This document shows positions 16,437 to 32,964 of a stretch of 64,000 bases of DNA, one piece after another. The notes below the pieces were generated by a model. That model saw nothing but the letters and a program-made list of their open reading frames with translations, was not told the origin of the DNA and made no database searches. Both the position numbers and the translations under genes were made by a program. The stretch comes from Oculina patagonica (Eukaryota). The stretch's first letter is position 1. Each line of letters starts with the position of its first letter. The stretch covers positions 17,112,001-17,176,000 of the forward strand of contig NC_135771.1 of the NCBI RefSeq assembly GCF_052425735.1. The letters run 5' to 3'.

Positions 16437-16449
16437 GTTGCCAAGCAAT
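16437..16449. promoter_or_regulatory. RFX X-box-like site upstream of Tctex gene 1
   Basis: GTTGCC-A-AGCAAT against consensus GTNRCC-N(0-3)-RGYAAC, 310 bp upstream of the ATG. Confidence 0.55.
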
Positions 16450-18711
16450 ACTAAATGATGAGTCAACTTTTCCTTTTTCTAAATGAATGTTTACTTAGCT
16501 TGTGCAAACGATCAAGCGAATATTGTGCATCGAGAATATACATACTAAATATGGTGGCAAATATGCAGATCTTCTAGCCTCGACTACTTAATTTCCTGTC
16601 CAAAAAAACTGTTAAATTTACTCAGAGCACAACTAAACTAACATTGTTTATAAAGCTAATTTCCAAAATGCTCCATGCTGTTATAATCTGTTCTATCTAT
16701 TGAACTAAAATTTTCCAGAATAAAATATTCAAAAGAAGTATGAACAGTGTTTACTTAGCGTGGGTGAAGGGAGGCTGTCAGAACAAAAGGCGACTTGAAT
16801 AACGGGTACCACTACAAAACAATGAGCATCAATTCAAAAGATTTTAGTGAATACTTTAATTAAATGGAAATTGACAAAAAGGTCTTAAGGCTGGGACGGC
16901 AATTAATTTAGCAAAGAAATTTTAACATCTTATTGTATGTTTGCTAATTACGAACTAGCTACTTTTTCTCAGAACAAAAACATTTGGTCTGCAGACGTTT
17001 TTTACAACGAATTGTAAACTGCAGTTCCCAAAATGACAGCTTTTTCTGTCGCCAAAGTGCTCTCATCTGAACGGTTTTTCTGCAATAAAAACTGACAGTT
17101 TTTTTGTCAGCTTTATAATACGATCTTTTAATTAACAACAACTTCTAATTACATTCTACGCATTATTTCTATGTTTTAAGATATTCGGTTAATGCAATGC
17201 TGTTTAAAGAAAGAACAATAATATACGATTATTGAATACGTTTTTGTGATAAGAATAATCAAGGTTGAGGCACGTTTAAATTCAAGTTTTATCCTTCGCT
17301 GTACATGTAACAAAACCCAAATCTATATATTGTTTTATCATATACTGTTGCAATAGAAAGTCTCGAATAGTATAATTATCTTACATTCAGTTGCGAGAAA
17401 ATTATTTAAAATGTGTAGTTTATAAAGCTCACGGAAACTACGTTCGCTTTCTTATTCAATCGTATTCTTCAGAGCCTTTTCAAATACTTCCTCAGCTGAC
17501 TTATGAAGAGATCTTAAGGCTCTCTCTAATTTTAAAGTCCACCGTTTTATATGTTTCTTAGTCTCAAAAACGAGGTTGGCTCGAAGTAACCTTTGAAGCT
17601 ATCAGAAGCTATCGCGACCAGAAGTGTTGCTCCCGCTCCGCCTTCCTCCCCCGTCTCCTGCCCCCCCCCCCCCCCCCCGCCCCGTGGATTGGACGCTAGT
17701 TTATCGCAGTTTACCCCCCAGCATTACGTCGGGTTGGGCAAAGAATGCTCCCGTGACCAATTACATGCATATAAACCTTTGTAATGGGAGGCTCTGCTAG
17801 TACAGCTTCTTTATTTTATCCAATGCAACCTCGTCTAAAAAAACACTACTGAATTATCATGCCTCTACACCTGATTTGGTCAAAGTTTTAACTGTTAGCT
17901 AAGAAATGGCTGAGATCTGCAACATTTACTGATAGCTAACAAATCACCTAAAATTTAACTGATAACGGAGGTTCCAGCAACCCCATCCACGAACTTATTT
18001 GTTCTATTAAAGTTGTATGCCGTGTTTGATGATTGTAATTAGGGCTCTTCGATGCTATGATTTAAAATTTACAACGAATAAAGATCCCAAAAAGAAGTTC
18101 CCTGTGAAAATATAATTTCAAGTCTAAAAAAGATAGCTTTGTTTTCTGTTTCTTTGGTGTCTGGTGCAAATTACAGCACTTAGAAATAAGTGCCAAATTT
18201 TTGTTCATGAAGAAGCGTTTCTGGTAGCGTCATAAGTTAGTCACAGTTTAGTCATGGTCAATTTAAGGGCTCTTTGGGTTATCTGTATTTGACAAACATC
18301 AGTGCATCGAGATCATTACAGAGAAACTTAGAATCTGGTGAACTTAAGCTGATTTTGAAGACAAAACAAGATTGGGAACACCAGCTGCCCTGCTTCAACA
18401 AACGAGGTAATTATTATCAAACAGCTACTGAGCAAAGGCCCGGCAATCTGGTGCTAAAACGACAGTCTTGCGATACATAAGGAAAAATGGATCTTACTCT
18501 TGGAGAGCAGTATATTTTCTGTTTGTAAAATCTGACGGGGAAAGGGGGCACGAGCTTTTGAAACACTTTGTAATAGGCGTATATCGTGCATGAGGCAAGC
18601 TACATTTAAGATAAATGTAAGTTCGGAATGCTATTCGACAGTTGTTTATCAGTGAAGGCCCAATCCTCGCCTCTACAAACCTGTTTCTTTTGCATTCACA
18701 TGACCAGTTAT

Positions 18712-18725
18712 GTTACCATGGTTAT
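18712..18725. promoter_or_regulatory. RFX X-box upstream of Tctex gene 2
   Basis: GTTACC-AT-GGTTAT, 379 bp upstream of the ATG. A second site GTTACT-AA-GGCAGC lies at 19061-19074. Confidence 0.6.
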
Positions 18726-19103
18726 GTTATAACCAGCCACGCGGACCTACACATTTGATGCAACTGGTTGACTATTCAAAGTACCAATCAATTCCAGACA
18801 AGCATTCATTTTCTTATAAAACCAATTGTAAAAAATCTTTCAGAACACAAAGCCGTGTACGCAATTAACTTCGAGAGCTTTCCCGGTGGATTAACTTTAT
18901 ATAGCTCTTTATTCGAAAGCGCTTTTCTAAGCTTTGTTATCGAATTGAATAGTTGAAGGTTTTGTGCCGAAAAGTGTTTGACGCAAGTAGCGGAAAACAA
19001 TAACAATAACGCTACCGATTTCTAAACAAAATGTGAAGTTACTAAGGCGCGCAGATTGAAGTTACTAAGGCAGCACGAAAAACCACTTGAAAGTGTTTGA
19101 AAA

Positions 19104-30353: not shown

Positions 30354-32122
30354 TATCTTGTTTCACGCACGTTTTTGCACCAATTAAAAGACGCTATCAG
30401 CAGACAAAGCAAAAATCTGCACGGTTTTGCGGGATTCATATACCGGTATCAGTATCTCGATAAGCTCCTAATGTTTACTTTTAGTTTTATTAAGAAAAAT
30501 GGTTATATATTAACTTGTTCTGCTTTAAGCCAGTCAAGTGTTGAGAATTTAATTGACATTAAGACACCCTTGGTAAGCAATACCGTATATCATTACTTGA
30601 TGACGTAAATTGAAAACCTTTTTAAAAAACATATTACGCATGCTCCTATAGAAGAGCTAAGAGAAGAGTGTGATTCATTTTAGGGAAAAATCTCATCGGA
30701 GAACATACGGCCACGAAAAGGAACAACAAACCACTACTTCCGACGTTTGGAAAAGGATTAAGGCTGGTTTGGCCAGCCGAAATATGATACAAAAAAAATA
30801 TATATCATTCCACGTTGTATCGGTCTCTACCCTAGTTTCAAACATGCTTATAATTATAGCAAAGTTAATTTTTTTTAAAATACTTAACGGAACGTCAGTT
30901 CCAATCGGCTTTATACAAACAGTTTCCGGGCCCTGGAACCGAGTTTAGCAACCTTGTGACGTCATTAGTTGTTACATGTCGGCATGGATTGGGAAGCGCG
31001 GTAGATTCTCTCCTATTGTTCGTATTGTCGTGATCTACTAGCCACCAAACTCATATACGTTTTGTCTGGATGAATCAGAAATACATATAAAGGCTTTGGA
31101 TGGAGGTGAAGTGATTCGTCGCATTAATATGAGTGCGACAGATTGGAACTGTTTAGCCGATACATTGAGTACACAATTAATTGTAAACGCGAGTAGCATC
31201 ACTAGTATTGAAGGTTCGATCGGTGCATGTGTTCCAAGTTCAAAAGAAGACTGATCCAATAGACGAGTGAGAACTTCGGAAGATTCCGAACCATTACGAA
31301 TCGTCATGGCGACAAGTTGTCGTGACGTCTTCGATATCTTCGGGGAGGTGCTTACGACGTCGGCAATGTCAGTTCTGATTGGATAGTTAGAATCGGAAAA
31401 TGATTTGGATGCGCTTCCGAGAATTTACTAGAAAAAAAGCGCAGCCGATACAAGCGGCAATGTGCTGTTCAAAAGACAAACACAGAAAAATAATTACGAT
31501 TATTTATTCCTTCATTTATTCAATCTCGATTTGGTATGAAAGCGTGAAAAATCACTTTAATCATATTTAGTGTTATTTACAGTTCACGCTACTTTTATGA
31601 AATCAGCTGTAATGTTTGTATTATTTTAATTGCTAATCTCGTACTTAAATGAAAGTGTGAAAAGATCAAACTTGTCAGTCAATCATTCATTTATTTAATA
31701 TATTTCAATTTGCGACAGAGGAAAGTAAGAATATTACGAAAATGTCAACACAACACAAATATTAAAAGCAGAGCGGAGGAAAATCGGTTTTTAAGTGTAA
31801 TGCAGTTTTTTTTTTCTTTTTTTTTTCCTCCTTTTCCAAGAAAGGGTTCTTTTTTCAGTTTATTCACTGAAATTTACGGCTGCGTCCAGCGTAAAGTTGA
31901 TTTCCCACATACAATAACTGAAGTTTAATCTTGATTCAAATATTATTCTTGAACTTGACCGGCGGGGGTGGGGCACAGTATGAGTTATTTTACACTTGGT
32001 CAAAACTTCCTTTACAATGCGATTCCTACAAAGAAAATTGATTTATAAACCAGAGTCACTGTTTGTAGCAAGCAAAGCCTACTTTCAGAGAGCCATATGG
32101 TCAATGTTTATGCTTATATCCA

Positions 32123-32653
32123 TCACTCTTTCAAGACGCCAAAAACGATAGCAACGGCAAACAACGAAGCATTTTGGAAAAAAGATGTAGAGAAATTATC
32201 TTTGCATTCATTCCAAAGAAAGCGACTGGCCATCAAAATGCCTTGTCCGCTATTTGAACCAATGCTAACACTGCATATCAAGCGAAATCTTTCCATCCCA
32301 AGATTTTTCACGCGGCCTTTAATATCCTCTGACAAACTGATACATAGCACTCGGCAAGTGCTTGGGTCGTACGATTGAGTTGAAAGTTTCTCTTGTAGAA
32401 TTTCATCCATGATTTTTTTTATTTCGTGTGCGTAAAATACGTTCTGTTTTTGCTGCCCTTCGGTTAAATTAGGTACATCGTGGCGTCGTGCTTCCTTTCC
32501 AAACAAGCTTGCGTTTCCCTTGCCTTTTTCTTGCTCCAACATCCATTGCCCTTCGTGCTCGGTTGCTAAGTTTTTCGTGGAGTCATTTCGCAAGCTTTTC
32601 TCAAAAATCCCATAATGTTGGTCACGAAATTTTCCATTTATATTCCCATACAT
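32123..32653 (-). CDS. Tctex1-domain protein 4, 176 aa, intronless CDS
   Basis: F.AHEIKKIMDEILQEKL....YDPSTCRVLCISLSEDIKGRVKNLGMERFRLICSVSIG...GQGILMASRFLWNECKDNFSTSFFQNASLFAVAIVFGVLKE. Confidence 0.93.
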   Translation of the reverse strand: MYGNINGKFRDQHYGIFEKSLRNDSTKNLATEHEGQWMLEQEKGKGNASLFGKEARRHDVPNLTEGQQKQNVFYAHEIKKIMDEILQEKLSTQSYDPSTCRVLCISLSEDIKGRVKNLGMERFRLICSVSIGSNSGQGILMASRFLWNECKDNFSTSFFQNASLFAVAIVFGVLKE

Positions 32654-32950
32654 TTTTAGCCTCTAGCACGCCGAAGGATGTTTTATGTAAAATAGAGACT
32701 TTCGTTTAAATTGAAGATCCGCCGCAGTGTATATTCCCTGCCTCCTAAAATATTTATGCCTCTAACAACGGGATTGAATTAATCTCTTCCTGTTAAGGAT
32801 GAACGTATAATATTGAACCTGAAGAGTCGCTTGGTTCTTAAACTGACAAAATGATGATTTCGTTATTGTTTTTTCACACCAAACCATAACAAGAGACAGA
32901 GTAATCTTCATTTCAGTGAATCAATGTTGTGGCAGATGTTTTATAAGAAC

Positions 32951-32964
32951 GTATCCATGGCAAC
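32951..32964. promoter_or_regulatory. RFX X-box upstream of Tctex gene 4
   Basis: GTATCC-AT-GGCAAC, 298 bp upstream of the ATG. Confidence 0.7.

Follow-up and report, generated by a model that had tools for sequence, protein, structure and literature searches.

We analysed a stretch of 64,000 nucleotides from the stony coral Oculina patagonica (NCBI RefSeq assembly GCF_052425735.1, contig NC_135771.1, positions 17,112,001 to 17,176,000 of the forward strand). The whole stretch is called here the window. It contains a cluster of four genes with a Tctex-1 domain (Tctex-1 to Tctex-4) and a non-homologous ankyrin-repeat gene. The ankyrin gene and Tctex-4 present upstream a strong match to the X-box, the palindrome bound by RFX factors. 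It is quite likely that these two X-boxes, and probably a third one at Tctex-2, are bound by RFX for the cilia programme, and that the cluster is not uniformly RFX-controlled, because Tctex-1 has only one half-site and Tctex-3 has none.

The two strong sites, at positions 26962 (ankyrin) and 32951 (Tctex-4), have the properties of functional RFX sites. Their fit to the consensus is perfect, they are in single-copy DNA, and their position is kept among corals. The ankyrin site also appears to lie just upstream of the transcribed region.

An earlier note on this DNA had proposed more than this. More precisely, it described a single RFX regulon of four genes, with X-boxes at a near-constant distance of about 300-380 bp from the start codon. 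All five strings that it claimed were found exactly at their coordinates. The four distances are also exact, measured from the site edge to the ATG and respecting the strand of each gene. The single regulon was not borne out in this form: the Tctex-2 site is degenerate and missing in 3 of 7 species, the Tctex-1 site is at background level, and Tctex-3 has no site. The best-supported part of the proposal is that it includes the non-homologous ankyrin gene, with its X-box in all seven species.

Conservation of the ankyrin and Tctex-4 X-boxes

We collected the orthologous cluster from 8 other coral assemblies (L001-L009) and scanned it with the position weight matrix (PWM) used for the window. 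The matrix is symmetrised. Its source is the training set of the hidden Markov model of Chen et al. 2006, which consists of 15 C. elegans X-boxes (PMC1794439, supplement 1). As an empirical background, 312 kb of non-target coral sequence gave 10 matches scoring at least 14. This corresponds to 0.011 per 350-bp window.

The ankyrin X-box (GTTGCCATAGTAAC) was recovered in 7/7 coral assemblies, at 321-363 bp from the ATG and with scores of 14.2-21.0. In the other six loci the scores are 14.2-20.7, with protein identity down to 52%. The Tctex-4 X-box (GTATCCATGGCAAC) is present in 6/6 assemblies at a score of at least 11.9, and in five of them at 14 or more. It lies 223-306 bp from the ATG. The orthologues score 18.9, 15.5, 18.9, 23.3, and 11.9, against 20.4 in the window. 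The nominal binomial P values are 2e-14 (ankyrin) and 1e-9 (Tctex-4), both inflated by the shared ancestry of the species. In the ankyrin-centred loci L001-L006 (130 kb), all 15 matches of at least 14 fall on four homologous positions.

In deep alignments of both promoters, the flanks are essentially unalignable. The X-box and a neighbouring E-box remain as invariant islands. Beside the ankyrin X-box, the string TCACCTG (alignment columns 46-52) is invariant in 7/7 species, and its surroundings vary. Beside the Tctex-4 X-box, CATCTGC is invariant in the six aligned species. These E-boxes suggest a partner of the basic helix-loop-helix (bHLH) type or of the Snail/ZEB type, so that each pair may form a composite module.

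Both sites are letter-identical to known nematode X-boxes, which are also training sites of the PWM. The ankyrin site is identical to that of bbs-7 and the Tctex-4 site to one of those of bbs-2. A 221-bp context of each site is single-copy in the 529-Mb assembly, where it matches itself only. A repeat origin was thus ruled out for both.

The positions of the sites and genes are given in Table 1.

Table 1. Genes, candidate X-boxes and neighbouring elements in the window (PWM ranks refer to the whole window)
Feature	Position	Strand	Distance to ATG (bp)	PWM score (rank)	Description
nanos gene	6923-7588				identified by Pfam
Tctex-1 gene	15489-16127	-			212 aa, intronless single open reading frame; Pfam Tctex-1 domain
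Claimed Tctex-1 X-box	16437-16449		310 (16437-16127)		1-nt spacer, T in last position
Degenerate Tctex-2 X-box	18712-18725		379 (19104-18725), upstream	12.3 (5)	Tctex-2 promoter; left half good, right half weak
Second claimed Tctex-2 site	19061-19074		30	10.5 (7)	Tctex-2 5' region
Tctex-2 gene	19104-19661	+			185 aa, intronless single open reading frame; Pfam Tctex-1 domain
Ankyrin-repeat gene	24859-26640	-			593 aa, intronless single open reading frame; Pfam Ank_2/Ank
X-box-like site in ankyrin coding sequence	25637-25650			13.2 (4)	codons ~330-334
Ankyrin 5' untranslated region, minimum extent	26641-26874	-			unspliced; RNA-like contigs
Ankyrin X-box	26962-26975		322 (26962-26640), upstream	21.0 (1)	ankyrin promoter; top match of the window
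E-box beside ankyrin X-box	26989-26994				CAGGTG on +, CACCTG in gene orientation; 13 bp upstream of the X-box
Tctex-3 gene	29661-30353	-			230 aa, intronless single open reading frame; Pfam Tctex-1 domain
Tctex-4 gene	32123-32653	-			176 aa, intronless single open reading frame; Pfam Tctex-1 domain
E-box beside Tctex-4 X-box	32933-32938				CAGATG on +, CATCTG in gene orientation; 12 bp downstream of the X-box
Tctex-4 X-box	32951-32964		298 (32951-32653), upstream	20.4 (2)	Tctex-4 promoter
Match in RAD23 coding exon	42350			18.2 (3)	codons VVMVT, ubiquitin-like domain
Match in protease coding sequence	55631			11.3 (6)	

Scores against the background

The window was compared with 1000 dinucleotide shuffles. 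Scores of at least 18 are expected 0.035 times and were observed three times; scores of at least 20 are expected 0.012 times. At a threshold of 10, the expectation is 2.2 and seven matches were observed. The three matches outside promoters (42350, 25637, and 55631) are all coding, and their count is near this expectation of 2.2. Against the shuffles, 26962 and 32951 stand clearly out, and 18712 is marginal. Neither 16437 nor 19061, the other two claimed sites, exceeds the background.

Both strong sites are perfect matches to GTHNYYATRRNAAC. This pattern has 19,339 matches on both strands of the 529 Mb, about 2.3 per 64 kb. A reversed-pattern control has 6,528, so that GTHNYYATRRNAAC occurs three times as often. 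The shuffle statistics therefore overstate the enrichment at the level of the window. Since the shuffles understate the true background, position and conservation have to carry the argument. The genome-wide excess may be part repeat-borne and part functional; some identical GTHNYYATRRNAAC variants recur within about 100 kb on C1.

The consensus of the earlier note (GTNRCC N0-3 RGYAAC) has 22 loci in the window with one mismatch at most. The ankyrin site matches it perfectly and the Tctex-4 site with one mismatch. Another perfect match, at 37195, had been overlooked. It lies inside a short tandem array of AAAGTTGC(T/C)CGA-like units at 37100-37210, which contains GTTGCCGAGCAAC with a 1-nt spacer. 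We dismissed it as a promoter X-box because it belongs to this array and looks repeat-derived. The match at 42350 was set aside as a coding coincidence in the ubiquitin-like exon of RAD23.

The earlier observation that nanos has no comparable site was confirmed (best PWM score 5.0). The region 37300-42300 has no comparable site either (best score 3.2); the RAD23 promoter itself was not mapped.

The Tctex-1-domain family served as a negative control. It is expanded, with 31 Pfam hits in the genome. Most of them are intronless and 20 are on the chromosome of the window. Among the 26 paralogues outside the window, none has a match of at least 14 within 500 bp of the ATG. Within 1 kb there are two, at 593 and 646 bp. 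The X-box as a trait of the whole Tctex family was rejected on these 26 promoters. It is gene-specific, because no paralogue carries such a match within 500 bp. Tctex-1-domain genes are found on C14, for example at 17.03-17.07 Mb and 23.1-25.2 Mb (the paralogue loci are L010-L035).

These data bear on the possibility that every site arose by chance in AT-rich intergenic DNA and was chosen post hoc. The motif is common in the genome, and equally good matches exist in the RAD23 coding exon and in the repeat array. Moreover, Laurencon et al. 2007 found that a lone degenerate X-box is not predictive and that a positionally conserved one is (PMC2375033). However, chance does not explain a position kept in 7/7 species (ankyrin) and 6/6 species (Tctex-4) despite diverged flanks, nor the absence of a comparable site from the 26 paralogue promoters. 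As a reading of all the sites, chance has hardly any probability. By the comparison of orthologues it is refuted for 26962 and 32951, and it is adequate only for 19061 and, by itself, 16437. The ankyrin gene and Tctex-4 carry predicted X-boxes that are positionally conserved in the sense of Laurencon et al.

The transcribed region of the ankyrin gene

Transcript evidence came from contigs of three runs (X1-X3) that behave like RNA-seq. They were compared with 26700-32699, where they cover only coding regions and untranslated regions (UTRs). The ankyrin contigs end at 26874 (run X2) and at 26813 (run X1, running into adapter). They stop 88-149 bp downstream of the X-box, and no contig crosses it. 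The depth is zero at 26900-27899 in all runs. Since this region has no cover and the 5'-most RNA is at 26874, the ankyrin X-box is at most 88 bp upstream of the 5'-most RNA. The Tctex-4 side of the comparison ended at 32699, which is 46 bp upstream of its ATG. Tctex-4 is transcribed in the three runs. One Tctex-4 contig may cross the X-box, as described below.

The near-constant distance claimed for the four sites is correct as measured to the ATG. It does not amount to a spacing rule. The ankyrin distance of 322 bp results from an unspliced 5'UTR of at least 234 nt. This explanation of the distance of about 300 bp applies to the ankyrin gene only, and for the other genes a long 5'UTR is assumed. 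A duplicated promoter was considered as a cause of the constant distance and rejected. Pairwise local alignments of the 450-bp regions upstream of the five genes score no better than shuffles (z ≤1.4). The sole exception is Tctex-2 against Tctex-3 (z 3.3).

An RNA element was rejected as an explanation as well. Rfam gives 0 matches over 14000-36000 of the window, and the ankyrin RNA contigs do not cover the X-box.

An X-box-like sequence is also found inside the ankyrin coding sequence (25637). It stands at the same codons in 7/7 species (the window and L001-L006), with scores up to 18.2. The amino acids at this place differ: SAMAT, SLIAT, STIAT, VPVAT, VSMVP, and VTMST. This may be an RFX site within the gene, preserved at the level of DNA.

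In L006, the region upstream of the ankyrin orthologue has received a retrotransposon open reading frame of Pao/BEL type (3311-8551, 1746 aa). The insertion spares the promoter and the X-boxes at 9567 and 9627.

Sites upstream of Tctex-2, Tctex-1, and Tctex-3

The Tctex-2 X-box appears in 4/7 species at a score of at least 12, at 343-379 bp from the ATG (nominal binomial P 3e-6 at this threshold). The orthologous sites at 343-349 bp score 12.3 in L001, 19.6 in L002, and 14.5 in L003. No X-box was found in L004 and L005, and L006 has a match only at 840 bp. Tctex-2 probably belongs with the ankyrin gene and Tctex-4 as RFX-type, its element being weakened in this species.

The second site claimed for Tctex-2 (19061) is a chance match. 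It is within a duplication specific to the window, and no orthologue scores 9 or more at that position. It is neither conserved nor above background.

A conserved block of about 270 bp precedes the Tctex-2 ATG (about 18810-19075). This non-coding DNA varies less among 7 corals than the Tctex-2 protein does. Long stretches of it are invariant, a TATA-like TTATAAAAC is present together with a CCAAT box at about -290, and Rfam has no match for it. It is probably the core promoter with a constrained 5'UTR.

The site claimed for Tctex-1 (16437) fails the PWM, which has a 2-nt spacer. Under a half-site model with spacers of 0-3 it scores 11.4. It ranks 25th in the window, where 25 matches are at least as good and 10 are expected by chance. 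In three closer species the site is kept, but its surroundings are kept equally (85% identity). The half-site GTTGCCA (TGGCAAC in gene orientation) is retained in L001, L003, and the distant L009. In the latter it is found at 281 bp, but its partner half is lost. The Tctex-1 site is then statistically indistinguishable from background, and may be at best a half-site.

Tctex-3 has no X-box. The best PWM score at 150-500 bp upstream is 7.5 or less, and 0/8 species have a site. This gene is transcribed, with a 5' end that reaches at least 30517.

Other elements are conserved in these two promoters. A forkhead-type GTAAACA is invariant in the Tctex-1 promoter (about 16490-16500) in 4 species and in the Tctex-3 promoter (about 30470-30480) in five. 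Near 30600, the Tctex-3 promoter has TTACGTCA, an element similar to a cAMP response element (CRE-like) and conserved in 3 closer species.

Taken literally, the earlier claim requires that 16437, 18712, 26962, and 32951 are all functional, at a fixed distance of about 300-380 bp, within a single regulon. All four sites do lie 298-379 bp from an ATG. The Tctex-1 half-site in the distant orthologue is also in favour of it, and spacers of 0-3 nt fit the published consensus (PMC10530576). The evidence against it comes from several genes. At Tctex-1, 24 other matches in the window equal or beat 16437, and its second half is not conserved. At Tctex-2, the element is degenerate here and missing in 3/7 species. 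Tctex-3 is without any site in 8 species. In addition, the upstream regions have no detectable similarity, and the canonical cilia genes of this genome have their X-box at 119-165 bp from the first detected coding exon, not at 300. We consider the full four-site claim unlikely. Conservation sorts the sites differently: the ankyrin gene and Tctex-4 are fully conserved, Tctex-2 partly, Tctex-1 only by a half-site, and 19061 not at all.

RFX factors and cilia genes in the same genome

The genome matches PF02257, the RFX DNA-binding domain, above cut-off at no fewer than six loci. These are on C14 (4.31 Mb, 87 bits), C2, C8, C4 (two), and C10.

As a positive control, the first coding exons of 9 canonical cilia genes were located by Pfam models, and 2 kb upstream of each were scanned. 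Three of the nine have an X-box of 17.3-19.6 at most 170 bp from the first coding exon detected. About 0.03 would be expected from the genome density. CFAP20 has an X-box of 19.5 at 164 bp upstream. Of the four tektins, two have one (19.6 at 158 bp and 17.3 at 119 bp).

The palindromes could be real and still be read by a factor other than RFX. This could be another palindrome binder or an NFI-like factor on TGGCA, or the E-box factor could be the true driver. Next to the two strong sites, the E-boxes show the same invariance as the X-boxes. In addition, the conserved Tctex-1 element (CTGGCAAC) would be compatible with an NFI half-site. However, the substitutions between species respect the X-box consensus, with GTTGCC, GTTTCC, GTTACC, or GTATCC on the left and GGCAAC, GGAAAC, or AGTAAC on the right. 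The same motif is present at the CFAP20 and tektin promoters, and the genome encodes RFX domains. Furthermore, studies ranging from choanoflagellates to vertebrates, with Nematostella among them, connect the motif with cilia (PMC10530576, PMC5245798). A non-RFX reader is very unlikely.

Forkhead motifs (RYAAAYA) are near most of the X-boxes examined. About 0.35 matches are expected per 150 bp of AT-rich DNA, and a forkhead co-motif beside the X-boxes was rejected as not above chance.

A model of RFX control and the points against it

With RFX as the probable reader, the following mechanism is proposed. A dimer of an RFX winged-helix factor would bind the palindromes at 26962 and 32951, and probably that at 18712 with lower affinity. 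At the invariant E-box, 12-13 bp from the X-box, a bHLH-type factor probably partners RFX. Such binding would activate the genes in cells with cilia or flagella, within the ancient ciliogenic programme of RFX. RFX occupancy, activation, the cell type, and the ciliary role of the ankyrin protein are inferred. The ankyrin gene and Tctex-4 are probable cilia or flagella genes.

Several points weigh against this model. The PWM comes from nematode sites and was applied to coral DNA. The motif has a high density in the genome, so that its count in the window is by itself unremarkable. The ankyrin protein gave only generic ankyrin repeats and clusters in a family search, without a recognisable ciliary family. 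That runs X1-X3 are RNA is a guess, and the transcription start site (TSS) is poorly marked by contig ends. The ankyrin gene, Tctex-3, and Tctex-4 are present in all three contig runs, so they offer no expression contrast. One contig of run X2 runs 462 nt beyond 32699. If collinear, it crosses the Tctex-4 X-box and reaches about 33161. Possible reasons for this extension are an alternative start further upstream, carried-over DNA, or a spliced leader. Finally, the Drosophila Tctex orthologue CG5359 is not RFX-dependent (PMC2375033). The status of RFX target is therefore not universal for the Tctex family.

Two further searches were made on the side of expression. In a co-expression comparison, the raw-read run yielded one read. 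An exact-protein look-up for transcript contigs of the Tctex-4 and ankyrin proteins of the window gave nothing on record. The Nematostella experiments that had been proposed for this locus are heterologous for a stony coral.

A stronger version of the model can be formulated. The coral-restricted ankyrin protein would be a new component of the cilium or the sperm flagellum. Its composite, invariant module of E-box and X-box (bHLH and RFX) would be shared with Tctex-4, and reinforced by a second X-box in the coding sequence, which would be under selection as DNA despite the drift of the amino acids that it encodes. This version is speculative, and we regard it as rather doubtful.

Comparison with known systems

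RFX control of ciliary genes is older than animals (PMC10530576). Few regulatory modules known in animals are as old, and the general principle is not new. In orthologues of multiciliated-cell genes, Nematostella included, no motif is more enriched than Rfx within 100 bp of the TSS (Quigley and Kintner 2017, PMC5245798). An enrichment of Rfx motifs at the promoters of cnidarian cilia genes has thus been published before. The coral sites are a further instance of this known system.

The closest resemblance is with the DAF-19/RFX promoters of C. elegans (bbs-7, bbs-2, osm-5, dylt-2/xbx-2). In these promoters, as in the coral, the site precedes the start codon and is an imperfect palindrome of 14 bp whose halves are separated by AT. 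The established targets of DAF-19 and the X-box include dylt-2, a gene for a Tctex-type dynein light chain (PMC1794439). However, the nematode X-boxes are mostly 50-250 bp from the ATG. In the coral this distance is about 300 bp, which for the ankyrin gene at least is due to a long 5'UTR. The Tctex genes of the coral are DYNLT5-like instead of encoding the dynein light chain of intraflagellar transport, and the coral sites are predictions from sequence. In Xenopus, Tctex1d1 is an outer-arm dynein light chain, and it co-purifies with outer-arm dynein (PMC7785291).

The promoters of vertebrate motile cilia, under Rfx2/Rfx3 and Foxj1, have the motif within about 100 bp of the TSS. The ankyrin X-box is likewise near the 5'-most RNA, and forkhead-like motifs are near several of the coral sites. 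Nevertheless, the forkhead motifs of the coral are at chance level, and the invariant partner is the E-box.

Conserved X-boxes have also been used to nominate novel cilia genes by Chen et al. 2006 (PMC1794439) and Laurencon et al. 2007 (PMC2375033). The ankyrin gene is nominated here in the same manner. Unlike those comparative-genomics predictions, ours concerns a single coral locus and is a prediction from sequence.

The locus contributes two deeply conserved coral X-boxes. It predicts a lineage-restricted ankyrin gene in a ciliary or flagellar programme, and the invariant E-box beside both strong sites hints at a combinatorial partner. The genome has about 30 intronless Tctex genes, few of them with an X-box. 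This natural contrast could show how duplicates are partitioned into RFX-dependent and RFX-independent ones. Coral cilia power feeding, mucus clearance, larval swimming, and sperm motility. Because of these functions, markers of the ciliary programme are useful in coral cell atlases.

Genes of the cluster and their neighbours

The Tctex-1 domain (PF03645) was found in all four Tctex genes by a Pfam search of the window, with E values from 1e-24 to 1e-28. The relatives of Tctex-4 carry the names tctex1 domain-containing protein 1-like and dynein light chain Tctex-type 5-like. The nearest named protein relatives are from Stylophora, Orbicella, Montipora, and Porites (54-74% identity), and other assemblies reach up to 94%. 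The ankyrin orthologues of other corals show 52-79% identity and are syntenic with the Tctex genes. The synteny of the cluster is preserved in the related stony corals compared. The linkage between nanos and the Tctex genes is conserved too. In the distant coral L009, nanos is at 17574-18215, a few kb from the Tctex-1 orthologue.

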